Shown here: one piece after another, positions 14,245 through 62,735 of the stretch
Layout of the letters: each line of letters begins with the position of its first letter
Numbering within the stretch: position 1 is the first letter of the stretch
Assembly: GCA_002269645.1 (NCBI GenBank)
Contig: NIVC01000717.1
Span: 1 to 64,000 of the forward strand
Direction: 5' to 3'
Length of the DNA: 64,000 nt
Origin: Macrostomum lignano
Taxonomy: Eukaryota
The notes under the pieces: generated by a model
Told to the model about the DNA's origin: nothing
The model's database searches: none
What the model saw: the letters and a program-made list of their open reading frames with translations, nothing else
Program-made: the position numbers and the translations under genes

Positions 14245-14316
14245 AAGCCTGTAATCAAGCTTTAACTAATCAAGTTTACTAACTTTGTTCAAAACAACCG
14301 TACATACTCATTTCAG

Positions 14317-15163: not shown

Positions 15164-15197
<34 letters not shown>

Positions 15198-19300: not shown

Positions 19301-19460
19301 TTGCTGGTCAACCAGCCTCCCAGATCCTCAGTTGCTGGGCCAGCCTCCCAGAGTGTCAGTTGCTAGGCCAGCCTCCCAGATGCTCAGTTGCTGGTCCACC
19401 AGCCTTCCTGCAGATCCTCAGTTGCTGGGACACTAGCCTCCCAGATCCTCAGATTCTGGG
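16310..19460. repeat. 28/31-bp minisatellite (GCCAGCCTCCCAGATCCTCAGTTGCTGG +/- CAC) with higher-order blocks
   Basis: Tandem units. A distinctive variant block recurs at ~17727 and ~18691. Confidence 0.93.
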
Positions 19461-20084
19461 CCGCCGACGAATAGGCAATAAAAATGATTCAGATTTAGCA
19501 TGTACATTTGCCACTACCGCAGCTGATAATCCACCAGCTTTTGACTAGCTGCTGCGTTGTCACACAAAATATTACCATCATGGCTTAGTCACACTGCTTA
19601 CTACACAAAGCGTAACGCATAGGATATATCAGTTGAATGAGTCGAGGAAACTCCTGTGCTAAAAATAGAACAAATGCTGCGCAGACTACAGTTGGGGGGT
19701 CGCGTATTGGTTTATAGCAGTGAGTCACAGGGGCCGGGGGGCTGTCTCAGTACTGCAGGTCTAGGGAATTCGGATGAATGGTCTTGAATGGGCCTTGTAG
19801 CAGTAGCTATGCTATATTACCATACTGACATTATTAGTATGCACTGCGCAGTGTTGTGCGTGTAGGAAGGAACCAATATGCTGGTTCGAGTTGAATAATC
19901 CTGAAAGGGTAAGGAAACAGAAAGATGGATGGGACGGACAGATGCTGTAGGCTCTAATAGAGAATAATTATAGTTGGAGCTAAAAATAGAATTTCGTCAT
20001 AGATTGTACTTGGAGTGGGGCATCGACAGTAGGACAAAGGCTAAAGCCCGTATGGTTAGACTAATCTCTGTGATTCAGGCATGC

Positions 20085-22335: not shown

Positions 22336-25300
22336 ATGCAGGATCAAAGATCAACAAGAGGACTACTCCTAGCGGCCTTGTTTCTGCTGACAATATTCTC
22401 AAACGAAGTGAGTTGTAAGCAGCCAAAGCTCTATCCGCAACCAAACTACGAAACTAAGGAGTACTGGACCAGGTGAGTCGTTTTGCAGTTCCTTCTAGCC
22501 CCAAATGAATATGGCCGAGCACGGCGTCTACATGTGGATGGTGTCCAGATGTCGCGCATATTCTTGAGTCTCCCCTCGTCCCCAGGGATGCCCAGCAGTC
22601 CATGGACCGGGCCTCGCGGGTGCTGCAGCAGCTGCGCTACTCCGCCAAGAACGTCATTCTGTTTATCGGCGACGGCATGGGCGTCAGCACGGTGACAGCC
22701 GGCCGGATTCTCAAAGGCCAGCTCAAGAACTCGTCGGGCGAAGAGGCGTCGCTTGCGTTTGACGAGTTCGATCATGCAGGACTGATCAGGACGTACAACA
22801 TGGACAGGCAGACACCCGACAGTGCGTCCACTGCGACCGCCTTCATGTGCGGTGTGAAGACAAACGGCTACATGCTTGGGGTGAACCAGGATGCAAAGCT
22901 GGGCAGCTGTTCGACTTACGATAGCCGACAGCACGACGTGGTGTCGTTTCTGAAGTTCGCCTCCGAGCAGGTGAGCGTCCAGAGCGGTATTCTTGTAGGG
23001 TTTTTGGGATGATTGTTGTAGGGTTGTTGGGATGATTGCTGTAGGGCTGTTGGGGTGATTGTTGTAGGGTTGTTGGGATGATTGTTGTAGGGTTGTTGGG
23101 ATGATTGTTGTAGGGTTGTTGGGATGATTGTTGTAGGGTTGTTGGGATGATTGCTGTAGGGCTGTTGGGGTGATTGTTGTAGGGTTGTTGGGGTGATTGT
23201 TGTAGGGTTTTTGGGGTGATTGTTGTAGGGCTGTTGGGGGTGACTGTTGTAGGGTTGCTGGGGTGATTGTTGTAGGGCTGTTGGGGTGATTTTTCTGGGT
23301 AATTCTAGCTGGATAGCTCTCTTTCTCTCCCTAATCTCCTCTTCAGGGCAAGGCCACTGGTGTGCTCACCACGGACCGCCTGACGGGCGCAACACCAGCC
23401 CCAGCCTACGCCAGCTCCGTCAGCCGCCAGTGGCAGGACGACACCGACCGAAACACGGACGACTCGAGCCCGGACTCGCCTGAGCAGCGACGCCGTTGCC
23501 CCGACATCGCCACCCAGCTGGTCGATCGGGCCGTCAATTTCACCGTCCTAATGGGCGGCGGTCGGCTCAAACTGCTGCCAAAAAATGTCACCACAATGGA
23601 CCAGTTTGGCGGTGTTCAGGTGAACGGCACACGCTCCGACGGCATCAATCTGGTGGAGCGCTGGAGCAGCTTGCAGCGGCAGCTCGGCCGGCGCCCAGTC
23701 TACGTGGAAACAGCCGACGAGCTGAGAAATCTTCGTGCAGATCAAGCTGACTCAGTTCTGGGTCTCCTATCAACCGAGAAGATGCGGTATCACTCGACAA
23801 ATATTCGTTCTGAGGGTTACCGTGAGCCCAGCTTAGCCGATATGACTCGGAAAGCTCTGGAAGTTCTGCGCAAGAATTCCAACGGTTTCGCTCTGATGGT
23901 TGAGGGCGCCCGAATCGACAGCGGTCACCATGCCAACCAGGCCCAGCGGGCTCTCTACGATGTCCTAGCATTCGACGAAGCTGTCCAAGTGGCTACTGAG
24001 ATGACTAGCATTGAGGACACCCTGATAGTTGTGTCTGCAGATCATAGTCACGTTTTCACTATCGGTCACTATGGTTACAGAGGCCAGCCTATTCTTGGAA
24101 AGATGGTTAGCAAGAGTAGCGACGGCTCGCTGCAGTACGAAGTGGCTCCCGACAACATTGAGAAGACCGTGGCCAGCTACAGCGATGGGCCGAGCGCCAA
24201 GCCGAATCAGCCGCGACCGAACATCACTGAGGATGTGCCTGAGGAGAAGGAAAAATACAGGTGACTGCCTTGGATGCAAAGTGGTAGAGAGGCGCCAAAA
24301 CAGACACAGAGAGAGGCGCCAAATCAGACACAGAGAGGCGCCAAAACAGACACAGAGAGAGGCGCCAAAACAGACACAGAGAGAGGCGCCAAAACAGACA
24401 CAGGGAGAGGCGCCAAATCAGACACAGAGAGAGGCGCCAAAACAGACACAGGGAGAGGCGCCAAATCAGACACAGAGAGAGGCGCCAAATCAGACACAGA
24501 GAGAGGCGCCAAATCAGACACAGAGAGAGGCGCCAAATCAGACACAGAGAGAGGCGCCAAATCAGACACAGAGAGAGGCGCCAAATCAGACACAGAGAGA
24601 GGCGCCAAATCAGACACAGAGAGAGGCGCCAAAACTGACTCGAGAGAGGCGCCAAAACAGACACAGAGAGAGGCGCCAAATCAGACACAGAGAGAGGCGC
24701 CAAAATTGACTCAGAGAGAGGCGCTAAAACAGACACAGAAAGAGGCGCCAAAACTGACACAGGGAGAGGCGCCAAAACAGACACAGAGAGAGGCGCCAAA
24801 ACAGACACAGAGAGAGGCGCCAAAACTGACACAGGGCCGGAGAGGTGCCAAAACTGACTCGAGAGAGGCGCCAAATCAGACACAGAGAGAGGCGCCAAAA
24901 CAGACACAGAGAGAGAGGCGCCAAAACAGACACAGAGAGAGGCGCCAAAACAGACAGAGAGAGGCGCTAAAACAGGCGCAGAGAAGGCGTCTAATCCAGG
25001 CATACTTACGACAGAAATATCTACACGGATCAAGCGGCTCTCACAAAGTGCTATCTTACTAAAACAAAAATTCCCTACCCTTTAATATTCCCAGATACCC
25101 AGCCCTGGTGCCGCGCCATTCCGAGTCGCATTCAGCCGAAGACGTGGCGCTATTCGCTCGGGGCCCGGGCGCCCACCTGTTCCAAAGCGTGCACCAGCAG
25201 TCCTACATTGGTCACGTGATCATGAAGGCCGGCTGTCTCGGCTGGTATGCTCGGACTGGAAATTGTCTGCAAGACCCCGAGTCTGCCACCAGTGCGGCAA

Positions 25301-27180: not shown

Positions 27181-32415
<5,235 letters not shown>

Positions 32416-34280: not shown

Positions 34281-34902
34281 CGAGTATTTCGAGTACAACA
34301 AATTTCTGTGGAAAACTGAGAAATTCTTCATCAGTAGCCTGCTATACCAAATGGGAAAGCACCCTTTCTTTGCCTCATCAACAGTCGGTTGGAAATAATA
34401 TTTAAACTGTGTGATAAACGCAAACACTTAATAAAAATCTCTGCAGCAATTGACAACGATAGATTGACTCATGTCCTGTTGGCTCTTCATGCCTGTCCAT
34501 TAAATCGAGAGCTCCATATTTGCTGAGTTTTGCAACCCAGGCAACTTCTTCACTTCTACTTCAAGTTAACTAGTTAAGGTGTCATAAGCTAGAGGAATAT
34601 TTCCCACCTACCCATGCTGAAGCGCTTCTGAAGTTGACAGAAGCATCTAACACTGAGGCATCACGTAGGAACTAGAAAGCTGTTAGGTAAACTTGACAAG
34701 CACTCTATCAAGTCTTAAAAATCATTTAAAATCATTATTTGTCAAGCACTGAAATTCGTCACTCAATTGGAGTGGCACCATAGGATGCGATAAGTCTATT
34801 TATTTGAGGTAAAATAATCGAGCGAAAGACGGCGGTAGAGAGCGGAGATTCCGGGATCTGGCAAAAAACACAAACTTAACGCCTGACGAAAGCAAGCAGC
34901 AA

Positions 34903-35687
34903 ATGGTGCAAGTTAAGGTGCAGTGGACCAGTCTGCTGCTAAGTCTGCTGGTGCTGACGGTGATCCCTATAATTTTAGGGTTCACTTTCGAAATTGTCAC
35001 GAAGGACGGCTTGAAGAGTCCGGCGTCGATGAGCACTATGTCAGGTATTACCACCATAGAATGTTCTGTGAAGTGTGCTCAAACACCTGGTTGCTATGGT
35101 TTCTCCTGGCTACATGGCCTGTGCCGATTTTTTAATTCGAGCTCATTCTTCGTGAGCCTATCGTCCAGTTCTTCGAAACTTTCGGTTTACAAACTGGGTG
35201 AGTCAGGAGTCGATCAGTTGTCTCAGTGACCCTGAATATAACTAGTCGGTGTCATAAATCTTGAACTCAAATCAGAAATTGAAACATCTTTTCAGTTAAT
35301 GCCAATAAGAAACTGAGTCTAGTTGGCTGCAAAAACAGTGCCACTCGCCAGTCGTACGTCTGCACCAAAGCCATGGACGGTAACAGAGAGCAGAACGATG
35401 TGAGTTTTTGTAGTGTTACCATGCGGTCCTCTAACCAGTGGTGGGAGGCCCAACTGTCCGCTCCATCGCAGGTCGAATACCTCACCATCTACAACCGGAT
35501 TAAAAATGCCGAGTTGCTCAACACCTTCAACTTGCTGGTTGACGGCGTCGAGTGCAACCGAGTGAACCTGACGGAGCCGTTCTCCATCGCCAACTTCGGT
35601 TGTAACGCTTTCGGCAGCAAAGTTCGAGTTGTCAATCAGTTGTACACTCATCTCATTCTCTGCGAAGTTGAGATCTACGGTTACTAG
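34903..35687 (+). CDS. Secreted PAN/Apple + F-type lectin (FTP/F5-8 type C fold) protein A, exons 34903-35197 and 35296-35687
   Basis: Signal peptide; C-x3-C-x4-C-x7-C PAN core; MDGN...WWEAQL...IYNR...LILCEVEIYG. Phase-1 GTGAGT/TTCAG intron. Confidence 0.85.
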
Positions 35688-36133
35688 CGACATCATGTGC
35701 AGCATCGAATTAACCTGATAACTTAGTCAGAGAAGACAAACTGTTGAGAAGTGCCTAGACTAACTGATTGTGAGCATATAGGCACTGGGTTTTCTGCTGG
35801 TTCAAAATCATCGTCTTGAATTCGTGCCACAGAGACGATTTAAACAAAATACACTGCTTGAGTCTGTTCAAGCGTCAGCATGCCAAAATGTTTCATCCAG
35901 AAGTTAATTACTCGATGCTAAGCCGGAGCCGCTTACGACAAATACTTCTTTAGTGGTTGAACAAATCATCCTTTTTAGCAACAACAAATGTGCAAGCTAG
36001 CACTCATAGTAGCAACTATAGAAACTGAAGAAAAAAATGCAGCAAAAAATAAATTAACAAGCAGCATAGCATTGCAATTTCATATTCAGATGTAAAAAAT
36101 AAAGAGAAAGCCGAAAATCAACATGTAGGTTTT

Positions 36134-36171
36134 TACGACGCGTTTCGCACACCAAGGTGCATCGTCAGGTA
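36134..36171 (-). ncRNA. Minimal type I hammerhead ribozyme of the Penelope-like element (PLE) type
   Basis: Minus strand reads UAC-CUGACGA-U-GCAC(CUUGGU)GUGC-GAA-ACGCGU-C|GUA: complete core, 4-bp stem II, palindromic stem III, GUC triplet and 3-bp stem I. Confidence 0.75.
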
Positions 36172-36329
36172 TATCGTTTGAAACGTAGGTGTGACTTTGA
36201 CTTACTTGACTTAGCTGCAGGGCTGTCCCGGAGGGGACACAGCGGGAAGGCGCGGGCGCCCATTCCGCTAATCCCTGAACGGCCGACGCGTCGCTATGGA
36301 CGGAGGGTTGGCGCCGCCCAGGGAGGTCC

Positions 36330-39300
36330 CCAGTGTCGCCAGCAGCTATAGTGCTCTCAGGAAAGGAGAGTTCAGCCCTGCGGGTGGCCCGAAGGTAGCG
36401 CATGAGCTGATTAAAGTTTTCGGGTTTGCACGCTTCAGTAATAGATGTGTGTGGCCCGAGGTAAGTGAGTCTGGCCCGCGTGAAGGCGGGACAGATGCTG
36501 ACGAAATGCTCAGCGGTTTCGTCACCTGAGTTGCAGAAACTACAGGTGGCGTTGGTGGCGTTGCCCTGCAGGTACTGGTGCCTGGAGAAGCAGCCGTGAC
36601 CAGAGAGGGTCATGGTGGCAGCCCGGATGTCTCTGCGCGAGAGGCGCAAGAGGAGCTTCCGGAGCTGGTGAGAGGGCTGAGGGACAGCGCCTCTGGATTG
36701 CCTGCAGTTCGTGCGGTTCGCCCAAGTCGAGCGGTGCTGAGTCCTGATCCACGCTTGATGCGCGAGTCGATGACACAGCCAGGAATCGGGACAAGAGGTT
36801 CGGGGCCGAGAGAGGAGCCGGAGGCACCAACTTTTGCAAGGGTGTCAGCCAGCTCATTTCCTCGGATCCCCACATGCCCGGAACCCACTTAAGGGTAATT
36901 TTGTTGGCGGAACCCAACACTTGAGAAGTTTGATACAGTCGAGGACTGTAGCAGAGTTGGTGCTGCAGCCACTGATGGCGTGCAAGGCAGCTTGGCTGTC
37001 CGAATGGAAAATGATGTTCTTGCCAATAACGCCAGTGGCGAGAAGCTCTGCAGTGCAGGAGCTGATGGCCAGAACTTCATTTTGGAAAACACTGGAGTTG
37101 ACCCCAGTGTATTGAGCGTGGGTAGCGATGACCCTCCCGTTCAGAAAGATTCCAACACCAAAGCCGGTGTTGGCTGACTGCTTAGAACCGTCGGTGTAGC
37201 AATGAAGCTCACCAGGGTTCCATTGGTCATTGATGTTATCGCGCGAGTCGATAGCTACGGAGTAGCGCTGTCTCAGGTTGAGCGTTGAGGCAATGCCATC
37301 GGTGAAGACGCGATTGGCCTGACACTCGTTGAGAAAGTTGAGGCACAGGTCGCTATGCGGGACAAGGTTCCGCTTAGCAGGTGCTCTCATGTAAATGAAT
37401 TTGACGCCGGCATCAATTAGACGCCGCGTCGTTCTAGCCGCCTCACCCCTGACGAAGAGGTCAAGAGGCGGTAGATTAAGGAAGGCCCCCATGCCAGCAA
37501 AGGGCGTGGACCTGGTGGCGTTGCAGATGAGCCTACACGCTCTGCCTTGGATCGTGTTGAGCAGGTCTGCATGGCTTTTGACCTGGGTAGCGCTAACCCA
37601 GACAACAGAGGCGTACGTAATGGCAGGTCTAACTACGGAAGTATAGATCCACCAAAGCCGCTTTGGGGATAGACCCCAAGAAGTGCCAAGTGCTCGTCGG
37701 AGCTGGGCCAGGATGGCTGAGGCACGCTTGGCTTTTGCTTTCACGTGGAAGGACCAGTTGAGCCGGTGGTCAAGTGTGACCCCGAGACATCTGGTCTGGT
37801 GCGCGAAGGCAATATCTCTGCCGTAGAGCTGCAGAGGACGTATGTTCCAGCGTAGTCTGCTGGTAAACATAATGGCAACGGTTTTGGGCTCAGAGAGTTC
37901 CAGACCATTGTCATTGGCCCAGGATTCTGCTTTGCGGATAAAGCTCTGCATCAGATCCCTGAGCGTGCTGGGAGACGGTCCTGCCACAATGGCCGTGACG
38001 TCATCAGCATACCCGACTTTGAAGACGGGGTCGGGTCGGGAGTCACTCAAAAGAGCGTCCATGACCAGGTTCCAGAGCGTCGGGGTGAGGACTCCGCCTT
38101 GGGGTCCACCCTTACAGACTCTGGTGGAGGCAGTTTGCCCAAGAAGTTGGGCAGTGACCGTACGGTTGGAGATCATGTACATGATCCACCGTATGAGGGT
38201 AGCATGAGCTTTGCGATTTTGAAGGGCCCTCTGAAACGCTTCAAAGATAACGTTGTCGAAGGCGCCAACAATGTCAAGAAAGAGAGCCAGGGCGTAACCG
38301 TCACCCAGTACCGCCCGTTCAATCTTCTCGACAATCGCATGCAGGGCGCTGTCAGTCGACCTCCCGGTACGGAAGGCGTGCTGATTATTGCTGAGGGGCA
38401 TCGCTGTCAGCTCGCAGGACAGCAGCCGCCAGAGAATAAGCCTCTCAGTGAGCTTAAGCATTGCTGACGTTAAGCTAATAGGCCGAAGGCCTTGACGCTT
38501 TGGTAGTCACCCTTCCCAGGTTTGGGAATAAAGACTACCCGAGCTTCAGTCCAGCATTTGGGAACGTATCCCAGCTGGATAGAGGCCCGCATAAGATTGC
38601 GGGTGAGTCTCAGGAACGAGGGTATCTTGGCTGCTTCACGAAGGAGAACAGGGTAGATACCATCAGGTCCAGGAGATTTGAAGGGTTTGAAGGTTCTGAC
38701 CGCACGAGCGATTAGGTCTTCAGTGACAATGCCCGCCGCTAGGGTGGCTCCATCCATCGAATGGTTGGGCTCCGGTCTAGCAGTAGGTACCCTCGGGAAG
38801 AATGTGCTAAGCATATGCTGAAGCACTTCTTCAGGGTCTTTAGTAAGAGAGCCATCATCTTTTTTGATCATGGCTAATTTGGACATTTTGTCCATTGTAA
38901 GGGCCTTGACAAGCCTAGAAGTAGGTCTGTCTTGATCCAATTCATTGCAGAATTGGCGCCACTTACATTCCTTGGCCTTGCGCACTTCAGATTTGAAATT
39001 GCGGGAGGCTTGCCGGAAAAGCTCCATGTCCTCCGGGTTTCCGGTCTTCATGGCACGGCGATGAAGGCTTTTGGCCTTCCGCCTGAGTTTCCCCAGCTCC
39101 GGGTTCCACCACGGCGCCGAGGTCTTGCCTTTGTAGGCGCGAGCAGGACAAGCCGCTTCGTAGGCTGCAATAATGCAACCTGTCAGCGTCTCAGCCATAT
39201 GATCCACATCCTCGCAGGTCTCAATCGGACGTAAGTCCGTGAGTTCCTGCAGGTGCAGATCAAGGGCAGCCTTGTAGGCCGCCCAATCAGTGTTGCGGAT

Positions 39301-40026
39301 ATTGCGCTCCAAGTGATCGGAGACTGGGTTTTAGTGTCCGCGATGTTAAAGGCGATAAAGCAGTGGTCAGACAGGGAGGGCTCCTCAGACCAGACTCTCC
39401 ACTCCTCAACTCTGTCAAAGAGTCTTGGGGTAACGAGTGTGGCGTCGAGGACCTCGGTCCATCTGCCATTATTAAAGGTAGGAGTGCTGCCGCGGTTGCA
39501 GAGCATGAGGTTTGTGTTAGAGATGAGGGCCAGAAGCTCCTCTCCTCTAGTGTTGGTATCTTTGCTGCCCCAGTGCTTGTGATGCGCGTTGAGGTCGACC
39601 CCTAAGCACAACTCAGCGTTCTGGGACTCGCAGTACTGCGCAAGGCGCAGTAAACTCTCAGGAGCAGGGTCTCTGTCACCTGGGATATAAACCGAGGCAA
39701 CAAGACACGTACGCGGAGAGAAATGATTAGATTGGATGACGCAAAGGTCTCCATCAGAGAGATCAGTCCTCAGCCAAGCCTGGAGATGGCTAGCAGCGAG
39801 GATAGCCGCTCTAGGGCGGCTGTTCCCCGGGCCACACACAAAAATCAGAGTAGCCAGAGGGAATGTTGGGCAACTTACCGTTGCGCATCCAGGGTTCCTG
39901 GATCAGGATGAGGCCTGGCCTGTACAGCTCAGCAATCTTCATCAGATTTACTGACGCAGATACGCAATGCTGTAAATTAATTTGCAGACAGAATGTCGCT
40001 CCTTTGGCAGCGTGGAGCTTAGTCAT
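36330..40026 (-). CDS. LINE ORF2 (apurinic endonuclease, reverse transcriptase, RNase H, C-terminal CCHC), split by at least six frameshifts in this sequence
   Basis: EN: QINLQH, LIQEPW, GVDLNAHH.WGS, SDH. RT: KSPGPDGI, QHAFR.GRST, LDIVGAFD, GPQGGVLTP, GYADD, LGVTLD. RNase H: YTDGSK, DSQAAL, WVPGHVGIRGNELAD. Zn finger: CSFC...ETAEHFVSIC. Confidence 0.9.
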
Positions 40027-40059
40027 ACTGTATTAAATGCAATGTCTGGCTAGAGCCCA

Positions 40060-41619
40060 GGGCCATCAAGGAGACTTGGACAACAGATCGTCCTCGTCCC
40101 AGGCCGCTGGGGCTTGACTGGGAGATGGGAGTTGGTCGACGTCCATGGCCTCCTCACCCCCACCGGCCCCCCAGCAGAGTCCTCAGGCTCCGATGACAGG
40201 ATGGAGGAAGCTTCCTCATCTGCATCTTTACCTTCAGACCCCACCAGGGTGGCCGAGGAGAGCTCGGATTCCGAAGACCCGGCCTCGTCCTCAACTCCTT
40301 CTCCGACTAGCAGGTTTGGTTCCCGGGGCTTGGCCGGAGCCGTTACCGCGGTCGCCGAACTGCTGCTAGCAGAGGGGCGAGACGCAGCTTTGGCTTTGGG
40401 ATCGGCTTGCGCCTTTCCTTGGGCCTTAGACTGCGCCCCGCTCTTGCCGGAGATGCCGGGGTTGGCAGTAGCCTTCCTTTGGCAGACTTTCCTCGGCGCA
40501 TCTTGAGCTTGAGGGCACCCAGCTGGAAAGAGGATCCATTAGGGTACCGACTCGCCCAAGTGCTGGAAAGGCCGAGGACAATTGAGTTGCCCGTCTCCCC
40601 CCTGCGGACTCGGCGGTGAACACCAGTCCACTAGCAGGGAGGTCGGGGTTCAGACGCAGTAGGACCCGGCGGATAACGTCTGGTCCAGCTGCGGTGCTCC
40701 TAGCAGGGACAAAGACCTGATAGGGTATTGTCTTTGGACGCTGGCCCTCGCGAAGAAAAAGAGCTCCGCCAAGGTCAGCATCCAAGGAGACCGTCGGTAG
40801 CCGCTTGAGCCGAGCGTCCTCCTCGCTGCTAGGAGCAATAAGAACGAATGTGCTTCGCAGCACCATCCGCTCAACGCCGATGGAGATTCCCTCCTCGACA
40901 GTCAGCCCAATCAGATAGGAGTCAACAGCACTCCACACTTTTTGAAGCTGATCAGTGGTCCAGTCCTGGTCGCGACCTTGGATGATCACTCCCGGGATTT
41001 TGGCCTTGACCTTCGCCGCAAAGGTAGCTCCCGAAGGAACCTCCTTGTTGGCAGTGGCCATTTGTTGCGCCGTGGTTTCGGCCTCAGCAGCCGCGGCAGC
41101 ATCTCCAGGGAGCGCCGCCGCTGAACTACTGGAGCTTCCACCGGCCGGCCCGCCTGGTTGCCTTGGGACTCCAGTCGCTTCAGCATCCATGGTGGACGCC
41201 GCCGCTTTGGCCCCCGCAGCTCCCTGCTTGGCCTGCCTTTTGGTGCGTTGTTTAGCGCGTTTGCGCTCAAGCCGAGCCCGCTGAGCTTCATCGGATCTGC
41301 CAGATTTGGCCGGTCCTTTAGGCTCAGAGCTCGCGGTTCCCTTAGATCCACCAGCGGAGCTGGCAGGTCTTTGGGCATTTTGAGTTTGGTAGCTCTGGTC
41401 GGATCTGCCAGCAGAGCCAGCCGGTCCTTCCTTTGCCACAGTTGAATCAGTCGGTTGGGATCTGCCAGCAGGGCCGGCCGGTCCTTCGGACTGAGGTTGG
41501 GGTTTAGAAGGGTCCCCGTCCCTAGAAAAAGCTTGGTTATCCATAGTCGGCTCGAAGGCCATGATAAAAGGTTGGTGGGCTACCCTCAAAGGGGCGCGGT
41601 ACCCACCCGGCCGCTCCAC
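40060..41619 (-). CDS. LINE ORF1 (low-complexity N-terminus, basic region), with frameshifts
   Basis: Long ORF upstream of ORF2 inside the TSD-bounded element. No clear zinc knuckle seen; the end coordinate is approximate. Confidence 0.65.
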
Positions 41620-41837
41620 CTGACCGGGCAGTAGGCCAATAGAACCCTCAAGGCTGGCCCGACACCAGGAGGGGGACCGCTTGCGACCGGACTACTCCCC
41701 GGCCTTCCAGCCCATCGGCACGGTCAACACCTTAGGCATTAGAGAGTACGTTGAGTAGTACCACGGCCTGCAGGTTGGCGAGCCAGACCCGCATACCCAA
41801 ATTCGGCCGAAGCCACTGGATAGGGTCGCCAGCGCCG

Positions 41838-42078
41838 GAGCCCAGTCTGTCCAGCAGCCCTCGGGTCTGCCTTGAACACACGCGGGGACGAGTACCCTGG
41901 GTCGACTTGCGAGACAGCGTGGGGGGGTCTGCGGCTGCCAGAGGCAAATAGAGGGTGCAGACCTACCACCGGCCTTGACCTGCCAAAGATAGGGGCAAGC
42001 GTGAAGCATCGCAGACCGTAGCCCATAGGCCTAGTCTGTCTCATACTTCACTGGCGTGCTGAATACACCTTCGCGTGC
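41838..42078 (-). ncRNA. HDV-like (nested double pseudoknot) self-cleaving ribozyme at the LINE 5' end
   Basis: P1 GCACGCG (42078-42072) pairs with CGCGUGU (41884-41878), with a G1-U wobble. P3 GGG/CCC encloses L3 UACUCGU. P1.1 AC/GU. P4 GCAG-A-CC(CGAG)GG-CUGC. Catalytic C at 41849 in CAGAC. P2 GACCCA/UGGG(C)UC. J1/2 is 168 nt. Confidence 0.8.
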
Positions 42079-43280
42079 AACGTAGGTGTGAGTAAAGCGA
42101 ATTTATAAATTTTTGTCAATGAAACAAATGTAGCTGGTATAAATTCGATTGACTCACACCATTCATTTCAGTTAGGATGGAGGTGAATGGGGGGAACCCT
42201 CAAAAAGTGACAGGTGCAGCCATAAATCATCAAATTTCAATACATTTTTTATATGAGTTTTAGCAATGCTAAGTAAAAAATCAGCATGAAATCTCATAGA
42301 ATTCACTTCATGGAAATCTCATGTGACTTATCGCAAGCCAGCATACCAGATGGCCGATTAAAACCTTGACGTCTGATGATTTGGTGGTATGGAAAAGAAA
42401 AAAATCATGAAAGAGAGAGGAATATTAATATGAAAGACAAAGGGTATAAAAGAGGTAATAAAAAAAGAAGAAATGAAAGAATGGGAAAGATAGGGAAGAA
42501 TATAATCCCAACTGGCCATAGTGAGTACAGAACAGAGGAAAGAGCTCATGTGCCCTCATATCAGTGCGAGGGCTGTCCGAGTACTGGGTACTCAGAAGTC
42601 CCAGGTCGTTTCCCCTTGACTCATCAAATGATTCATCCCACCTCATCACTGCTTGTTCACCTTCGCGTTACGTCCTCAGGCTCTCAGGCGTGACGTCCGT
42701 TTTAAACCTCGTATCTCCCCAAGCTATTTTGCTTCCGTCACGTGACCTATTGCGCAACCCTAGGATTTTATAGGTCGTCTACGCACATGACGTCACTTGG
42801 CTGCCAAACGACGCCATTCAAGGAATGGTCAAGGCCACTTTGTTCTCATATCATGCCTGTGATTTTTTATTAAAGACAGTGGCTGTGTGCACCCTGGCGC
42901 ACTTTAAGCGACATTGTCACACAACCGGCGAGAGGCATTGCTGCCCATTCCACCGACTCCCCTGAGCAGGCACACAAGCGCAAGGATACGTACGCAGTCA
43001 TACGCACAGGCACACACTCACACAGGAGTTTACAGCGGCCCTAACTTTACTTTATTTATCGTCAGGCATGTACACTGTGCCTTGGAGGTTGGCCTTTCAA
43101 GGGCATTACAAGCAGATCCAAGCTGAGATTGGCAACGAAGTTTTGGTTGGTTATTCCCGCAGCCAATCGCTTTGTCATGAAAGAATTTTCATAAATCAAT
43201 AAATAATGAAGATTGCTTCTGAGCCCTAGGTTTCCACAGCTACCAGAGACAGAAGCAGTTGCCCAAATCCAGCCTCCAGC

Positions 43281-44085
43281 ATGTATTGCCAAACTGTTGA
43301 GCACTTTCTACCCCTGCTGCTGCTGCTGCTGCTGCTGCTGACTGCCAGTCCACCAGCGGCTGGCTTCACCTTCGAAATCGTGGGATCCGAGAGCTCATCA
43401 GCACCTGCGAGCATGAAGTCTGTGGCTGGCATAAGTAACTTGGACTGCTCGGTGAGGTGTGCTCAAACAGACGGCTGCAGCGGATTCTCCTGGCTGCAGA
43501 GTCTGTGCCAGCTGTTTGAATTGAGCGCCTTCTCTGGCACCTGGCTGAGCTCGCCACCCTGCGAGATCTTCAAGAAGATAGAAGAGCCGGCAGCTGCTAC
43601 CAGTAAGGAACGAAACGTCACATGGCGTACAGTTTTATCTTGGTCTGGTAAACCTTGAAGCTCATTCACAACTCTGGCTACTCGTTCCCGCAGGTTCTTC
43701 GCCCGCCAACATAAAAAAGTTGAAAATTTCCAGCTGCCAGCACAGCAATACCTACGCTAGCTATTACTGCACAATCTCTATGGACGGCAACAGGGACCAG
43801 ACTGTCTACAGCGCTACTGTAAAAGGCATCGGCGAATGGTGGGAGGCGCGGCTGGCCGCTCCAGCTTTCGTGGCCTACCTCACCATCTACAACCGGCTTT
43901 CCAGTGCTAGTTGGCTCAACAAGTTCAACCTGCTGGTTGATGGCGTTGAGTGCAACCGAGTGGACCTGACGGAGCCGTTCTCCATCGCCAACTTCACCTG
44001 CAATGCTTTCGGCAGCGCAGTTCGAGTTGTCAATCAGCTTAGCAATCATCTCGTTATCTGCGAAGTTGAGATCTACGGTTACTGA
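43281..44085 (+). CDS. Secreted PAN/Apple + F-type lectin-fold protein B, exons 43281-43602 and 43694-44085
   Basis: Same architecture and phase-1 intron as protein A. The C-terminal LLVDGVECNRV.LTEPFSIANF.CNAFGS.VRVVNQL...CEVEIYGY is nearly identical. Confidence 0.85.
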
Positions 44086-45210
44086 GACGTCAAGGTCGTG
44101 TCAAATGAATAACGGATCAACTTCATCCCGAAGCTGCAAAATCTTACTTTTTTATACAACTATAAAACTGACATAAATTAGATTTTTACTCTTAAACAAC
44201 TCTTTGAAGATGAATTTGAAATTTAGGACTTGTAGAAAAATAGATAAGTAGAAATTGTTAGCGACTCAGAAAAAATAAACGCTGGAAATACCTTTCTTGT
44301 TGAACCGCATCAAATCAATCAAGTTTGAGTAATTAATGCTGTTTTCGAACCCACCGCCGACCACAAAGACTCGACGGCTACTCCAGCCCTGTATTCGCTC
44401 TCCAGTTTCCAGTAAAAAGTGGAAATCTATTCACAACAACAAAAATGTTTGCTTGGTTGGGAAATTCAAGCTAAGAACGACACTGTGGAGAGAATTGCAG
44501 AGGTCCCGCCTCTTGACTGGTCGGGTCCCTGTTGCTAGAGCCTTACTTTCGAAGAAAGAACTACAATGAAGGGCAGGAAAAGTGGATTTAAATACTTTCA
44601 GTGGTGATCAAACCTGTTAAAAGTTCTCTATAGGCCCTTAGACTGGAAATTTTTTGGGTCTGCTTTTGTTTGAATCCACAGCAATCTACTCGTAGTCGCT
44701 TTTAGAGTTATTAGCTCAGCGAGATTGGCATGGCTCTTAGTCATGAGTAGCCTTCGCTTAACCCTCATTTCTGAGCTGCAGCTCCGCATCCTGCCCGTGC
44801 CCGGTTGCCCGTGCCTTTAGTCTCCGTCTCCCCAGAGTCCGCTCCGTCTGCTCCTTGTTCTCGACATTCATTTGTATTTTTTCCTCACATGACCAGCTTA
44901 GGCTTGTCCAGTCTGCGAGTGCAATAAAACATGTTTACCAAACTTCCTTGGTCGAGTGTATTTTTTACATGTCTGTGCCAAGGACCTAAGTATCGCAACT
45001 TCTTGCTTCTGGCTCAAGGATTCAAAAAAACACCTGATGTGTCAACTCTAGCATATCGGTTTCGCGTGAAGATTGTTCCATTAGGCTGATATAAGTTTTG
45101 TCTCTGCTCTGGCTTGATGGAGCTCTGGAGCTCTGGAGCTTCAGCCCAAGAACCCCAATCCTCCTGATCACTCGCTGTTCAGAGACTAATAGCGTTCTGT
45201 TCAGCCCACC

Positions 45211-47520
45211 TTAACCATGAGCGGGCGGATGGCCCGATTTCGGGTCATCCCGCCAGCACCGAAGCGAACGGCTGCGCGTTTGTAAAAGTCAATGGGAAAT
45301 CAGTCATCATCTCAGCACACCCGTTCCCGACGGGAATGGCCCGATTTCGGGTCAGTGTCTAAGAATGTTGCAAATAGTAGATGACGCAAAAATGAGAATT
45401 ATTAGCTTAGATATGTCACACCTGTAATTTTAATAATTCGTTTATAATAAAACTACTGTGGAAGTTTTTTAACAAAACTGCAAAAATTTATTGTACGAAG
45501 TAAGCTTGTTCCCAATGAAGCCGGAATAGTCTAATTACATGACTTATAAGGGACAATTTCCAAGTAGGAAAAGATGTAAACACTGGAGCATCTGTAAGAC
45601 ACGAGTAAGCAGGATGGTACAATGAGTAGGTAGGTAGGTAGTTAGGTAGGTGGTTAGGTACATTTGGGTAGGTGATGAAAGGGAACGGCCAGTTAAGGGA
45701 TTGTGCCTGAATAGGAGACTCAGAACTGTGGTACATGCACTTGCACGGGACTGCAATAGAGCCGAAAAATTCATACACGAATAATGCAACGCATAACAAT
45801 TCAGTGAATAACGAACATTAACATCAACAAAAATTCGAATACGTAATAACGATTTTGATTCATCTAATGGTTTGAAGGTAATAAAGCTAATAGCTAATAG
45901 TTAGTGCGAGAGTGCCAGTGTGAAAAACAGGCACCTAGGCAAAGGGCTGGAACTCCCGGGCAGGCTTCGCAAACGAATGTAGTCTTCTTGACCTGGCCAG
46001 CTGCATAGCACACACGACATCTTTTGTGTGGTCGGACCTGGTCTTCCGATTCTTGGAGCCTTGCTTGGTGAATGGGCGTCAGCACCATCTCCTCCGCCAA
46101 TAGCAAGAGCGCCAGCACCACCTGGTGTAGGTCCACGTCTCCTGGCAACCCCAGCGTCCTCCACAAGTCTCTTTATTGCCAGCCTCAGAAACTGCAGAAA
46201 GGTCTTGGTGCCACCTGACTGTCGGTAGATCATCCACGAGTTCTGCACAAGCATCGCAAGAAGATGAAATCCCATATTGTGGAACCAGCGCATGCTCTTT
46301 CGGTTCGCGAGGTACGGGTGCATTGAGGCATCCAAATGGTCAATCCCGCCCATACTGGAAGAATAGGCAAGCACGCTAGCAGGCTTTTGCACTACCGCGA
46401 CGGTTGCGTTGAACCTGAATGCATTCTGCCTTGCCCGCCGTGTCCAGCAAATACAGGGTCTTGGTGCCGCTTTGCTTCCTGTCGACAAATTTACACGCTA
46501 AGAGGTCACCTGAACGTGCGAATGCAGATGAAGTTGGGTGGATGTTGACAGCCTGCAAATCAGCGGGAATGCCGCGATCCTTTCGCACCGTCCCAGCCAG
46601 CAGCGTATCGTGTTGCAGCAACCAATCGACCAGCCGGCGTGATGTAAACCAACTATCAGTGAACACATGATGTCCGAGATGGAGGAGACCGCGGCACAGC
46701 TCTGCCACAACTCTCACGCTCATACTCATGCCTTGACATCCGAGTCGTTCACCAAACTGTTGATTAACCTCAGGAGACGTGTGGATGACGAAGTTCCATA
46801 AATGACACAACGGAGACACGACAGGAGCTGCTTAAATCGGTCTCTTGATAGAGAGAAAGGCTTGGAAAGAAACGGGCAGTGAAAGATCAGGTCGGTTGAC
46901 CAGTAGCTGGCTATTTCTGGCTTCTTGTCGACTCCCATGAGCAGCACAATGCCCACCAACTTTCGAGCTTCATTAGTGGAGCAATCACGCCAGTTTAACA
47001 CCAGCTTCGGTACAGCATCCTGAGTCTCTGCCTCCTGAAAGATCTTCCAGGCTTTTGCGTTGGTCCATCGGCTAATATCTTCAAACAGTTGATCCGTCAG
47101 AAATAGCTTCAGGAAAGCTTCTTCGTTTCCATCCGCAGCATGTGGAGAATGCCAATCAGGTCGTGCACCGGGCTACCGAGGAATTCAGGCAAGGCTGATG
47201 GTCGATTATCAGTGTCAGCTTGAACCATGTGCCACTCACCAACGTGTTCGACTCCTGGGTTCTCTACCTCATCTTCAAACTCATCAACGGCCTCGTCAGC
47301 AGTTGAGTAATAGCTAGACGAATTAGCTGACTCCGAACTCGCACCAGAATCCATGGTTTGTTGATAAACGATTAGTTTGAATGGATCTTGGAAACTCTAT
47401 GCTAGAACTCTATGGAATGCATTTGACTTAACAGCTCCCGACGTCTACGGTTGTGAAAGTTAGACTAAGAAAATTTGTCTGATTTGTCTATGGCCCGATT
47501 TCGGACCAAGCCGTCGGGAC
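45211..47520 (-). mobile_element. Defective piggyBac DNA transposon (transposase remnant ~47354-45894)
   Basis: TTAA at 45211-45214 followed by CCATGAGCGGGCGG. Transposase motifs FTDSWFTS and MGGIDHLD plus the C-terminal CRVC...CEAC...C..C..WH. Frameshifts and an internal deletion; outer TIR on the right not found. Confidence 0.88.
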
Positions 47521-50500
47521 TATGGCACATTATGTTACTTATGGCACATTATGGCACATTATGTTATTTATGGCACACTATGGCACACTATGTTACTTAT
47601 GGCACACTATGTTACTTATGGCACACTATGGCACACTATGGCACATTATGTTACTTATGGCACATTATGTTACTTATGGCACACTATGGCACACTATGGC
47701 ACATTATGTTACTTATGGCACATTATGTTACTTATGGCACATTATGTTACTTATGGCACATTATGGCACATTATGGCACACTATGGCACATTATGTTACT
47801 TATGGCACATTATGTTACTTATGGCACACTATGGCACACTATGTTACTTATGGCACACTATAGCACACTATGGCCCATTATGTTACTTATGGCACATTAT
47901 GGCACATTATGTTACTTATGGCACATTATGTTACTTATGGCACACTATGGCACACTATGGCACATTATGTTACTTATGGCACATTATGTTACTTATGGCA
48001 CATTATGTTACTTATGGCACATTATGTTACTGCACATTGTGTTACTTATGGCACATTATGTTACTTATGGCACACTATGGCACACTATGTTACTTATGGC
48101 ACACTATGGCACACTATGGCACATTATGTTACTTATGGCACATTATGGCACACTATGGCACATTATGTTACTTATGGAACATTATGGCACATTATGGCAC
48201 ACTATGGCACATTATGTTACTTATGGCACACTATGGCACACTATGGCACATTATGTTACTTATGGCACACTATGGCACACTATGGCACATTATGTTAATT
48301 ATGGCACATTATGGCACACTATGGCACATTATGTTACTTATGGCACACTATGGCACACTATGGCACATTATGTTACTTATGGCACATTATGGCACATTAT
48401 GGCACATTATGGCACACTATGGCACACTATGTTACTTATGGCACACTATGGCACACTATGGCACATTATGTTACTTATGGCACATTATGGCACACTATGG
48501 CACATTATGTTACTTATGGAACATTATGGCACATTATGGCACACTATGGCACATTATGTTACTTATGGCACACTATGGCACACTATGGCACATTATGTTA
48601 ATTATGGCACATTATGGCACACTATGGCACATTATGTTACTTATGGCACACTATGGCACACTATGGCACATTATGTTACTTATGGCACATTATGGCACAT
48701 TATGGCACATTATGGCACACTATGGCACATTATGTTACTTATGGCACATTATGGCACACTATGGCACATTATGTTACTTATGGCACATTATGGCACATTA
48801 TGGCACACTATGGCACATTATGTTACTTATGGCACACTATGGCACACTATGGCACATTATGTTACTTATGGCACACTATGGCACATTATGGCACACTATG
48901 GCACATTATGTTACTTATGGCACACTATGGCACACTATGGCACATTATGTTACTTATGGCACATTATGGCACACTATGGCACATTATGTTACTTATGGCA
49001 CATTATGGCACATTATGGCACACTATGGCATATTATGTTACTTATGGCTCACTATGGCACACTATGGCACATTATGTTACTTATGGCACACTATGGCACA
49101 CTATGGCACATTATGTTACTTATGGCACACTATGGCACACTATGGCACATTGTGTTACTTATGGCACATTATGTTACTTATGGCACACTATGGCACACTA
49201 TGTTACTTATGGCACACTATGGCACACTATGTTACTTATGGCACACTATGGCACACTATGGCACATTATGTTACTTATGGCACACTATGGCACACTATGG
49301 CACATTATGTTACTTATGGCACATTATGGCACACTATGGCACATTATGTTACTTATGGCACATTATGGCACATTATGGCACACTATGGCATATTATGTTA
49401 CTTATGGCTCACTATGGCACACTATGGCACATTATGTTACTTATGGCACACTATGGCACACTATGGCACATTATGTTACTTATGGCACACTATGGCACAT
49501 TATGGCACACTATGGCACATTATGTTACTTATGGCACACTATGGCACACTATGGCACATTATGTTACTTATGGCACACTATGGCACACTATGGCACATTA
49601 TGTTACTTATGTCACATTATGGCACACTATGGCACATTATGTTACTTATGGCACATTATGGCACATTATGGCACACTATGGCACATTATGTTACTTATGG
49701 CACACTATGGCACACTATGGCACATTATGTTACTTATGGCACACTATGGCACACTATGGCACATTATGTTACTTATGGCACATTATGGCACACTATGGCA
49801 CATTATGTTACTTATGGCACATTATGGCACATTATGGCACACTATGGCATATTATGTTACTTATGGCTCACTATGGCACACTATGGCACATTATGTTACT
49901 TATGGCACACTATGGCACACTATGGCACATTATGTTACTTATGGCACACTATGGCACACTATGGCACATTGTGTTACTTCTGGCACATTATGTTACTTAT
50001 GGCACACTATGGCACACTATGTTACTTATGGCACACTATGGCACACTATGTTACTTATGGCACACTATGGCACACTATGGCACACTATGTTACTTATGGC
50101 ACACTATGGCACACTATGTTACTTATGGCACACTATGGCACACTATGGCACATTATGTTACTTATGGCACACTATGGCACACTAAGGCACATTATGTTAC
50201 TTATGGCACACTATGGCACACTATAGCACATTGTGTTACTTATGGCACATTATGTTACTTATGGCACACTATGGCACACTATGTTACTTATGGCACACTA
50301 TGGCACACTATGGCACATTATGTTACTTATGGCACATTATGGCACACTATGGCACATTATGTTACTTATGGAACATTATGGCACATTATGGCACACTATG
50401 GCACATTATGTTACTTATGGCACACTATGGCACACTATGGCACATTATGTTACTTATGGCACACTATGGCACACTATGGCACATTATGTTAATTATGGCA

Positions 50501-53500
50501 CATTATGGCACACTATGGCACATTATGTTACTTATGGCACACTATGGCACACTATGGCACATTATGTTACTTATGGCACATTATGGCACACTATGGCACA
50601 TTATGTTACTTATGGCACACTATGGCACACTATGGCACACTATCGCACTCTGGCACACTATGGCACACTTTGGCACACTATGGCACATTATGTTACTTAT
50701 GGCACATTATGGCACACTATGGCACATTATGTTACTTATGGCACATTATGGCACATTATGGCACACTATGGCACATTATGTTACTTATGGCACACTATGG
50801 CACACTATGGCACATTATGTTACTTATGGCACACTATGGCACATTATGGCACACTATGGCACATTATGTTACTTATGGCACACTATGGCACACTATGGCA
50901 CATTATGTTACTTATGGCACATTATGGCACACTATGGCACATTATGTTACTTATGGCACATTATGGCACATTATGGCACACTATGGCATATTATGTTACT
51001 TATGGCTCACTATGGCACACTATGGCACATTATGTTACTTATGGCACACTATGGCACACTATGGCACATTATGTTACTTATGGCACACTATGGCACACTA
51101 TGGCACATTGTGTTACTTATGGCACATTATGTTACTTATGGCACACTATGGCACACTATGTTACTTATGGCACACTATGGCACACTATGTTACTTATGGC
51201 ACACTATGGCACACTATGGCACATTATGTTACTTATGGCACACTATGGCACACTATGGCACATTATGTTACTTATGGCACATTATGGCACACTATGGCAC
51301 ATTATGTTACTTATGGCACATTATGGCACATTATGGCACACTATGGCATATTATGTTACTTATGGCTCACTATGGCACACTATGGCACATTATGTTACTT
51401 ATGGCACACTATGGCACACTATGGCACATTATGTTACTTATGGCACACTATGGCACATTATGGCACACTATGGCACAATATGTTACTTATGGCACACTAT
51501 GGCACACTATGGCACATTATGTTACTTATGGCACACTATGGCACACTATGGCACATTATGTTACTTATGTCACATTATGGCACACTATGGCACATTATGT
51601 TACTTATGGCACATTATGGCACATTATGGCACACTATGGCACATTATGTTACTTATGGCACACTATGGCACACTATGGCACATTATGTTACTTATGGCAC
51701 ACTATGGCACACTATGGCACATTATGTTACTTATGGCACATTATGGCACACTATGGCACATTATGTTACTTATGGCACATTATGGCACATTATGGCACAC
51801 TATGGCATATTATGTTACTTATGGCTCACTATGGCACACTATGGCACATTATGTTACTTATGGCACACTATGGCACACTATGGCACATTATGTTACTTAT
51901 GGCACACTATGGCACACTATGGCACATTGTGTTACTTCTGGCACATTATGTTACTTATGGCACACTATGGCACACTATGTTACTTATGGCACACTATGGC
52001 ACACTATGTTACTTATGGCACACTATGGCACACTATGGCACACTATGTTACTTATGGCACACTATGGCACACTATGTTACTTATGGCACACTATGGCACA
52101 CTATGGCACATTATGTTACTTATGGCACACTATGGCACACTAAGGCACATTATGTTACTTATGGCACACTATGGCACACTATAGCACATTGTGTTACTTA
52201 TGGCACATTATGTTACTTATGGCACACTATAGCACACTATGTTACTTATGGCACACTATGGCACACTATGGCACATTGTGTTACTTATGGCACATTATGT
52301 TACTTATGGCACACTATGGCACACTATGTTACTTATGGCACACTATGGCACACTATGGCACATTATGTTACTTATGGCACATTATGGCACACTATGGCAC
52401 ATTATGTTACTTATGGCACATAATGGCACATTATGGCACACTATGGCACATTATGTTACTTATGGCACACTATGGCACACTATGGCACATTATGTTACTT
52501 ATGGCACACTATGGCACACTATGGCACATAATGTTACTTATGGCACATTATGGCACACTATGGCACATTATGTTACTTATGGCACATTATGGCACATTAT
52601 GGCACATTATGGCACACTATGGCACATTATGTTACTTATGGCACATTATGGCACATTATGGCACATTATGGCACACTATGGCACATTATGTTACTTATGG
52701 CACATTATGGCACACTATGGCACATTATGTTACTTATGGCACACTATGGCACACTATGGCACACTATGGCACACTAAGGCACACTATGGCACACTATGGC
52801 ACACTATGGCACACTATGGCACACTATGACACACTATGGCACACTATGGCACACTATGGCACAATATGGCACAATATGGCACACTATGGCACACTATGGC
52901 ATACATGTACACTATGGCACACTATGGCACACTATGGCATACACTATGGCACAACTAGGGCACACTATGGCATAGTATGGCACAACTAGGGCACACTATG
53001 GCATACACTATGGCACACTATGGCACACTATGGCATACTATGGCACAACTAGGGCACACTATGGCATACTATGGCACAACTAGGGCACACTATGGCATAC
53101 ACTATGGCACACTATGGCACACTATGGCATACACTATGGCACAACTAGGGCACACTATGGCATACACTATGGCATACTATAGCACACTATGGCATACACT
53201 ATGGCACATTATGGCACATTATGGCACACTATGGCACATTATGTTACTTATGGCACATTATGGCACAATATGGCACATTATGGCACACTATGGCACATTA
53301 TGTTACTTATGGCACACTATGGCACACTATGGCACATTGTGTTACTTATGGCACATTATGTTACTTATGGCACACTATGGCACACTATGTTACTTATGGC
53401 ACACTATGGCACACTATGGCACATTATGTTACTTATGGCACACTATGGCACACTAAGGCACATTATGTTACTTATGGCACACTATGGCACACTATAGCAC

Positions 53501-59500: not shown

Positions 59501-60017
59501 CACTATGGCACATTATGTTACACTTATGGCACACTAAGGCATAATATGCCACTATGTTACACTTATGGCACATTATGTTACACTTATGGCACATTATGTT
59601 ACACTTATGGCACATTATGTTACACTTATGGCACATTATGTTACACTTATGGCACATTATGTTACTTATGGCACACTATGGCACATTATGGCACAACTAT
59701 GGCATACTATGGCACACTATGACCCAATATGGCACACTATGGCACAACTATGGCATACTATGGCACACTATGACCCAATATGGCACACTATGGCACACTA
59801 TGGCACACTATGACCCAATATGGCATACTATGGCACACTATGACCCAATATGGCACAACTATGGCATACACTATGGCACACTATGGCACACTATGGCACA
59901 CTATGGCACACTATGGCATACTATCGCACACTATCGCACTCTGGCACACTATGGCACACTATGGCACACTATGGCATATTATCGCCCACTATCGCACTCT
60001 GGCACAATATGGCATAC
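47521..60017. repeat. ~12.5-kb satellite built from 10-bp TATGGCACAC/TATGGCACAT and 9-bp TATGTTACT words, with ~1.9-2.0-kb higher-order repeats
   Basis: Direct. Near-identical ORF translations recur at an offset of 1917 (53484/55401, 54155/56072). Confidence 0.97.
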
Positions 60018-62171: not shown

Positions 62172-62735
62172 CTGCAAGGCAAGGGCCAACATTTAAGTTA
62201 AACAGGCTAAATGCATCTTAATTAATAGTGTGTGCTCAACGTTCATTTAGTATGCAGCAGAGAGAAACAGAGAGCGGATAAACAATAGCTTTCAAATAGT
62301 TTAAAAAGCTCTTCTTACCTGTTTAAGAGCAATCCATAGTTTACATATTAGCTACAATAGAATCTTGCGCTGCTACGTATGCAGAGAAAATTTTGTATTA
62401 CCACTTCAAAAGTCTCTTGCTTCTCTTGAAGATGACAATATCAGACACGCGTCTACTGGTTTGTGGAAAGTATATATCGGCAATGCAAAAAGCTTGCACG
62501 CGGCAGGTAAAGGAAGTATAGCATAGAATTTCTGCTCAGCCTAGCTAATGGGTGTATTTTAGCCTTAAGGCAAAGCCAATTGAAGAAGTCTAGGTGTCAG
62601 AGACCCGTCCTGGCAACATCATCTGGGTTCGAGTTCACTTTTGACAGCGGAAAACAAAGTTGAGTTTGGAGGTGTTAGAGAGTGTTAAAGGATGAATATA
62701 CATTTTAAATGCTTTAAAAAGCGACTGACACTTAC

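Follow-up and report, generated by a model that had tools for sequence, protein, structure and literature searches.

Introduction

Self-cleaving ribozymes of the hepatitis delta virus (HDV) kind are known to free the RNAs of long interspersed nuclear elements (LINEs) from co-transcripts, and minimal hammerhead ribozymes, typically with a short helix I, are found in Penelope-like elements (PLEs). Here we explore a locus of the flatworm Macrostomum lignano at which predicted members of the two classes lie next to each other. Within a stretch of 64,000 nucleotides (contig NIVC01000717.1 of assembly GCA_002269645.1, positions 1 to 64,000 of the forward strand; hereafter the window) a full-length, inactivated LINE on the minus strand begins with a predicted HDV-like fold and is followed, shortly past its 3' end, by a hammerhead motif of the PLE type. 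An initial annotation of this stretch proposed that the two ribozymes act together on one RNA, or that the LINE is inserted preferentially beside PLE hammerheads. We conclude that the placement of the two motifs side by side on the same strand probably reflects coincidental nesting of transposons and not a two-ribozyme device for excision and circularisation.

HDV-like ribozymes cleave at the first nucleotide of helix P1. According to the size rules described for them P1 has 6-7 bp, P2 at least 5 bp and P3 3 bp, while P4 is variable. G.U wobbles are conserved at the HDV cut site (G1.U37) and in loop L3 (U20/G25), and in both CPEB3 and HDV joining segment J4/2 opens with the catalytic C. The ribozymes of R2 elements have J1/2 segments of 216-498 nt, with separations between the two strands of P1 that range from 23 to more than 700 nt, and in large HDV-like ribozymes activation comes from structured J1/2 domains.

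For the minimal hammerheads of PLEs four features emerged without being imposed by the searches, among which within-family covariation. Surveys describe most PLE-type hammerhead motifs as dispersed single copies, probably tied to truncated PLEs, and single minimal hammerheads from PLEs showed no cleavage in vitro. In the Anolis Poseidon element PAc the open reading frame (ORF) has its start at stem II, 26 bp upstream of the hammerhead cut; this hammerhead required the element's own protein, and the PAc study found no RNA-seq reads that start or end at the presumptive cut.

The LINE and its predicted HDV-like 5' end

The positions of all features are collected in Table 1, where nucleotide n of the LINE corresponds to window position 42079 - n on the minus strand. 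The element consists of a 5' untranslated region (5'UTR, nt 1-516), ORF1, ORF2 (with apurinic/apyrimidinic endonuclease, APE, reverse transcriptase, RT, RNase H and a C-terminal Cys/His region), a 3'UTR and a tail of the (AAGTCA) type. The APE endonuclease, the RT, a target site duplication (TSD) and the simple-repeat 3' tail together identify it as an APE-type LINE. Its 13-bp TSD, TCACACCTACGTT, is exact at the two edges of the LINE and occurs nowhere else in the 64-kb window, which shows that the element was inserted via target-primed reverse transcription. The first three nucleotides of the 3' TSD copy (TCA) could alternatively belong to the last AAGTCA unit of the tail, as a microhomology used in priming.

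Pfam identified Exo_endo_phos_2, Exo_endo_phos and RVT_1 domains in a pieced translation of the LINE. RVT_1 and RNase_H occur together in its homologues, and the RNase H motifs DGS...E...D are recognisable in its own translation; candidate affiliations for this RNase H-bearing element are the clades I, LOA or a Nimb-like one. A fragment of ORF2 is 79-86% identical to its best matches among the M. lignano UniRef proteins, and short segments of ORF1 are 92-93% identical to two proteins of the same set, which were the only matches in the ORF1 search; by these identities the DNA comes from M. lignano or a very close relative. In three-frame translation ORF2 is frameshifted several times and meets an in-frame TAG stop at least once, and this copy is therefore dead.

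The first 284 nt of the LINE can be drawn as a complete nested double pseudoknot of the HDV kind, with P1, P2, P3, P1.1 and P4 in canonical order. An initial descriptor that limited the distance between the strands of P1 to about 70 nt gave no HDV-like match, because of the 169-nt insert in J1/2; with that distance unrestricted, the fold was the single matching site in the whole window. The strongest argument for it is its position. The 5' strand of P1 consists of exactly the first 7 nt after the TSD, an element end that is defined independently of the fold, and it pairs at all seven positions. When the 516-nt 5'UTR was subjected to 20,000 dinucleotide shuffles, 53 of the shuffled sequences contained the core, 15 of these also had a partner for P1, and a single one had P1 at nt 1. 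On the sense strand of the LINE P1 starts at 42078, which bears out the claim of the initial annotation that an HDV-like motif is at nt 1. Features that the descriptor did not require also fit HDV, namely the G1.U wobble, the CAA after P1.1, the long P4 and the CGAAU in J4/2. In a comparison of residues with HDV and CPEB3, U185 and G190 presumably take the positions of the HDV U20.G25 wobble.

An alternative would be that one or both motifs of the locus are look-alikes, chance matches to permissive descriptors with no catalytic ancestry. As regards the HDV-like fold, the core descriptor alone is indeed permissive, with about 0.5 matches per shuffled 64-kb window, and this descriptor as well as the one for the hammerhead was composed or tuned after the motifs had been seen. 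Rfam gave no match for the HDV, CPEB3, drz or twister families, either at gathering score in the whole window or at E<=10 in 41700-42250; its compact models may not accommodate a J1/2 insert of 169 nt and so long a P4. Two metagenome LINEs with 45% amino acid identity, L002 and L003, the contigs of which stop at the tail, lack an HDV-like fold under the same descriptor and have leaders unrelated to that of the window LINE. Plain minimum free energy folding of both LINE ends did not discriminate. Against chance resemblance stand the coincidence of P1 with the TSD-defined end and the fit of the features that were not required, and LINE nt 1-284 is probably an HDV-like ribozyme as predicted from the descriptor and the constrained fold.

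GCACGC forms a direct repeat at 42073-42078 and 42054-42059 (minus strand; LINE nt 1-6 and 20-25), and its second copy could provide an alternative P1 of only 6 bp and with it a second cleavage site 19 nt into the element. The following were also rejected. A P1 starting 3 nt inside the TSD (GUUGCA/UGCGAU) has a poor P2, a 10-nt L3 and an unmatched J4/2; a fully relaxed HDV descriptor gave thousands of matches and was uninformative; and for a twister-variant ribozyme at the LINE 5' end, an idea taken from Perere-3 of Schistosoma mansoni, no twister match was obtained.

The hammerhead motif

The second motif reads UAC-CUGACGA-U-GCAC(CUUGGU)GUGC-GAAA-CGCG-UC^GUA on the minus strand (36171-36134) and has the complete hammerhead core, with C3-U-G-A-N-G-A9, G12-A-A14, A15.1-U16.1 and H17 (36168-36137). 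In agreement with the initial annotation, it is located on the sense strand of the LINE with its predicted cut after 36137, just outside the TSD: the motif begins about 10 nt downstream of the insertion, and C17 lies 58 nt past the 3' end of the LINE and 44 nt beyond the TSD. Since it is outside the TSD, the hammerhead is part of the host flank and is not copied with the LINE.

A strict descriptor, built from the published features of minimal PLE hammerheads, matched this site only when both strands of the window (128 kb) were searched, and matched none of 200 block-wise dinucleotide-shuffled windows; a relaxed descriptor gave 0.06 matches per shuffled window. The three PLE features that can be judged in a single copy are all present, including the G10.1-C11.1 pair and the palindromic 15.2-16.2/loop 3 segment. 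An extra U at 36161 creates an AUG across A9-U-G10.1 (36162-36160, minus strand), the A of which is 26 nt from the cut, and the reading frame that it opens ends after 9 codons. Based on the PLE hallmarks and on an AUG spacing as in PAc, the motif is taken to be a genuine PLE-type relic. Rfam lacks a match here too, no hammerhead family having been found at gathering score or at E<=10. The absence of strict matches from the shuffled windows and the embedded AUG at PAc-like spacing argue in the opposite direction, and with the position of P1 also considered we think it unlikely that either motif is a look-alike.

On its own the hammerhead is predicted to be inactive. Helix I has 3 bp, where 4-5 are the norm for PLEs, and helix II has 4 bp and one pair past a bulge, where 6-8 are the norm; the helices are shorter than those of the S. 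mansoni families and within the range of a D. virilis variant with a helix I of just 2 bp. Helix III amounts to 2 bp closing a 2-nt loop and can therefore form in a dimer but not in a monomer. In the lowest-energy fold predicted for the region the core nucleotides fall into a different hairpin (z = -0.2). No coding remnant of a PLE RT or GIY-YIG domain was detected within about 3 kb downstream and about 5 kb upstream, and there is neither a second hammerhead in the 64 kb nor a pseudo-long terminal repeat (pseudo-LTR) pair of a PLE, or a tandem or paired arrangement, nearby.

Insertion site and related copies

Immediately upstream of the LINE is a 23-nt inverted repeat (42085-42107 and 42138-42160, 91% complementary, with a spacer of 30 nt). 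The TSD (42079-42091) overlaps the outer 7 nt of this repeat, hence the insertion point of the LINE is the foot of what could fold as a hairpin or cruciform. The repeat itself could be the end of a miniature inverted-repeat transposable element or part of a pseudo-LTR. A paralogous empty site was not found in the window, where the sole match is a repeat of host exons.

One related copy informs on the 3' junction. L001, on a JGI metagenome contig (sample 3300038379), is a LINE with 59% identity in protein sequence. Between its positions 2430-2512 and window positions 36195-36290 the 3'UTR blocks (TTAGCGGAATGGGCG, CCCTGCAGCTAAGTCA) are nearly identical and the tail, of the AAGTCA type, is the same, a likeness that points to a conserved element at the 3' end that the RT would recognise. 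At both known 3' junctions, those of L001 and of the window, the tail is followed by TCA(A)CAC.

These data bear on the second proposal of the initial annotation, preferential insertion next to PLE hammerheads. The LINE family would then prefer a sequence or structure in PLE pseudo-LTRs or hammerhead-bearing repeats. One candidate site would be the foot of the inverted repeat beside the hammerhead, and copies would often end up by PLE hammerheads. The 7 nt shared by the TSD and the edge of the inverted repeat fit such a preference, the common junction hints at a short preferred primer site, and by our own estimate the adjacency of LINE and hammerhead is improbable under random insertion. However, past the common bases the L001 flank is unrelated to that of the window and, over about 220 nt, contains no CUGANGA box and hence no hammerhead, while the target sequence of the window is found nowhere else in it. 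RNase-H-bearing APE LINEs are not known to be site-specific in general, which we also count against the proposal. Insertion targeted to PLE hammerheads is unsupported, and we judge it decidedly unlikely.

Further relatives were sought with little success: a scan of metagenomes for the two-block 3'UTR pattern returned just two unrelated chance matches, and a protein search with the ORF2 C-terminus gave no match. L002 (about 80-160) and L003 (about 72-150) have a common 5' leader that opens with a 7-bp hairpin and continues with a second 7-bp helix (CUGCAYG/CRUGYAG), in which compensatory changes occur, and then GGGCAAAGCC. Rfam had no match for this leader, which could be a different structured 5' element.

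Joint action of the two motifs

The first proposal of the initial annotation was the excision and circularisation of a read-through RNA. Spelled out as a two-ribozyme cassette, it would have the HDV-like ribozyme cleave at nt 1 and the hammerhead after 36137, with dimerisation or a PLE protein switching the hammerhead on in trans, and RtcB would circularise the resulting RNA of 5,942 nt. Part of this stands. The motifs are on the same strand and in the correct order; it is established that HDV cleavage leaves a 5'-OH and that a 2',3'-cyclic phosphate remains upstream of a hammerhead cut; RtcB joins such ends in retrozyme RNAs according to the literature; and the ACGCGU palindrome could pair in trans with another copy. 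Excision and circularisation of the unit of about 5.9 kb, however, found no support. The hammerhead is solitary, with a helix I of 3 bp, no helix III as a monomer and no partner in the 64 kb; its core is sequestered in the predicted lowest-energy fold; and it sits in the host flank, outside the mobile unit, at a single locus where the LINE copy is dead. In addition, single minimal hammerheads are inactive in vitro, the PAc study lacks RNA-seq ends at the presumptive hammerhead cut, and the L001 flank is free of hammerheads. We consider such a cassette extremely improbable.

A combined scenario would place the LINE in sense orientation in a PLE pseudo-LTR, with read-through from the PLE promoter, the HDV-like ribozyme freeing the 5' end and a trans-activated hammerhead the 3' end, or would have the family home to PLE hammerheads. 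This too is very unlikely. If it were true, a LINE RNA of about 5.9 kb that RtcB can ligate would be the first retrozyme-like circular RNA made by two ribozyme classes.

We favour coincidental nesting of transposons as the explanation of the locus. The first 284 nt of an RNase-H-bearing APE LINE would be an HDV-like ribozyme that cuts the LINE RNA at nt 1 from transcripts that read in from upstream and leaves a 5'-OH, as in R2, L1Tc and other LINEs. Target-primed reverse transcription placed this LINE about 10 nt upstream of a solitary hammerhead that was already there, presumably a remnant of 5'-truncated PLEs or of their non-autonomous derivatives. The hammerhead belongs to the target DNA and not to the LINE, and the LINE copy has decayed since its insertion.

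Several points weigh against this reading. For one LINE and one hammerhead in a 64-kb window to lie on the same strand within 60 nt, the chance is roughly 0.1-1%, an estimate that varies with the amount of non-satellite DNA counted; as the adjacency is improbable a priori, room is left for a target preference. Confirmation from a curated covariance model, from covariation across copies or from experiments is available for neither ribozyme, and the absent Rfam match lowers confidence in the HDV-like assignment. The PLE origin of the hammerhead is read solely from motif features, with no PLE gene or second copy found, and a single related flank, that of L001, was examined.

Genomic setting

The window is very rich in repeats, with kilobase arrays of 4-, 10-, 20- to 28- and 39-41-bp repeats and a few gene fragments. 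The LINE is flanked by duplicated exon pairs (34813-35684 and 43230-44082, plus strand) with sub-threshold Pfam matches to PAN and F5/8-type-C (discoidin) domains; 35439-35695 and 43837-44092 are 83% identical. These exons are on the opposite strand at both sides, and the LINE between them is antisense to host exons and forms part of an island rich in transposons. A decayed transposase of the piggyBac type (DDE_Tnp_1_7) is present in three stop-free segments at 45904-47396 (minus strand). It is followed at 47521-60014 by 12.5 kb of satellite built from a 10-bp unit, TATGGCACAT, with a higher-order period of 39 bp. Further long arrays have a 28-bp unit (16315-19462) or are the many runs of the tetranucleotides GTCT, TAGT, AGAT, ATCA and GTTA. 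Other coding remnants are two fragments of alkaline-phosphatase ORFs at 23362-24264 and 30669-31565 (plus strand; Pfam E ~1e-64 each), with microsatellites between them, a RING-finger ORF at 14285-15499, and, near the end of the window, an ORF of 426 aa without Pfam match (62685-63965, minus strand).

Table 1. Coordinates of the LINE, the predicted HDV-like ribozyme and the hammerhead motif (window positions unless given as LINE nt).
Feature	Position	Strand	Evidence or remark
Full-length inactivated non-LTR retrotransposon (LINE)	36195..42078	-	5,884 bp; both ends set by TSD
5' TSD copy, TCACACCTACGTT (AACGTAGGTGTGA on + strand)	42079..42091	-	exact 13-mer
3' TSD copy	36182..36194	-	exact 13-mer
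ORF1, 378 aa, ATG at 41562	40426..41562	-	no Pfam domain
ORF2 region (APE, RT, RNase H, zinc-knuckle-like C-terminal part)	36270..40026	-	frameshifts, TAG stop; 3' limit approximate
3'UTR and tail	36195..36290	-	blocks CAGGGRTTAGCGGAATGGGCG, CCCTGCAGCTAAGTCAAGTAAGTCA common to metagenome relative L001
Predicted HDV-like self-cleaving ribozyme, LINE nt 1-284	41795..42078	-	descriptor match and constrained fold; cleavage site 5' of G at 42078
P1 5' strand GCACGCG, nt 1-7	42072..42078	-	G1.U201 G.U wobble
J1/2 peripheral domain, 169 nt, nt 8-176	41903..42071	-	predicted closed multibranch domain, -62 kcal/mol
Catalytic core 5' half, nt 177-203	41876..41902	-	descriptor and constrained fold
P1 pairing	nt 1-7 with 195-201	-	GCACGCG / CGCGUGU, 7 bp
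P2 pairing	nt 177-181 with 280-284	-	ACCCA / UGGGU, 5 bp
P3 pairing	nt 182-184 with 192-194	-	GGG / CCC, 3 bp, all G-C
L3	nt 185-191	-	UACUCGU
P1.1	nt 202-203 with 187-186	-	G202-C187, U203-A186; 2 bp
J1.1/4	from nt 204	-	first letters UCAA
P4, ~14-bp stem, one bulge, branched tip	41807..41864 (nt 215-272)	-	constrained fold
J4/2 CCGAAUU (nt 273-279), then P2 3' strand UGGGU (280-284)	41795..41806	-	C273 or C274 as candidate catalytic C
Solo PLE-type minimal type-I hammerhead motif	36134..36171	-	descriptor match
Hammerhead helix I, 3 bp	36171-36169 with 36136-36134	-	
Hammerhead core C3-A9	36168-36162	-	extra U at 36161
Hammerhead helix II GCAC/GUGC	36160-36157 with 36150-36147	-	
Hammerhead G12-A14	36146-36144	-	
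Hammerhead palindrome ACGCGU	36143-36138	-	
Hammerhead C17	36137	-	predicted cut after C17

Comparison with known systems

Each motif is of an already known kind, and that they are paired is most likely a matter of chance nesting. Should the HDV-like fold be confirmed, a macrostomid flatworm and an RNase-H-bearing APE LINE would join the cases in which a ribozyme defines the 5' end of a LINE, and it would mean that scans with covariance models overlook HDV-like ribozymes with a long J1/2. The hammerhead would add one further dispersed PLE-type motif, with a Poseidon-like embedded start codon. The pairing as such would become biologically important only with a genome-wide association or a back-junction, and would then link LINE biology to a retrozyme-style biogenesis of circular RNA.

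The fold at the 5' end resembles the ribozymes of HDV and of R2-type LINEs in the nested arrangement of P1, P2, P3, P1.1 and P4 and in a predicted cut 5' of the nucleotide that opens both P1 and the element. With HDV-like ribozymes in general it has in common the G.U wobble at the cut site, a 7-nt L3 with U...CG and the C that opens J4/2, and with those of silkmoth and honeybee R2 the long J1/2 insert. It differs in that no Rfam HDV-family match was obtained, P2 has only 5 bp and P1.1 has a U-A pair in place of one G-C. Moreover, the host element is not an R2 or ingi but an RNase-H-bearing APE LINE of a free-living flatworm; a literature search found no report linking Macrostomum to ribozymes.

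The hammerhead shares the CUGANGA/GAAA/UH core and the short helix I with the minimal PLE hammerheads (Cervera and de la Pena 2014), as well as a palindromic 15.2-16.2 segment with a 2-nt insert (ACGCGU) that suits dimers, and it shares with that of Poseidon PAc an AUG where stem II begins, 26 nt upstream of the cut. Unlike those, its helix II has 4 (+1) bp instead of the usual 6-8 and its helix I only 3 bp, its neighbourhood contains neither a PLE ORF nor a pseudo-LTR pair nor a second copy, and the frame of the AUG spans 9 codons.

Retrozymes are non-coding tandem repeats of about 170-1,000 nt with the same hammerhead at both ends, whereas the LINE of the window measures 5.9 kb, is coding and stands at a single locus with two unrelated ribozyme classes, one of them outside the mobile unit. 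The Perere-3 LINEs of S. mansoni offer a further parallel, for there too the 5' end of a flatworm LINE is a ribozyme cleavage site beside the TSD; their ribozyme is a twister variant, whereas the fold in the window is HDV-like.

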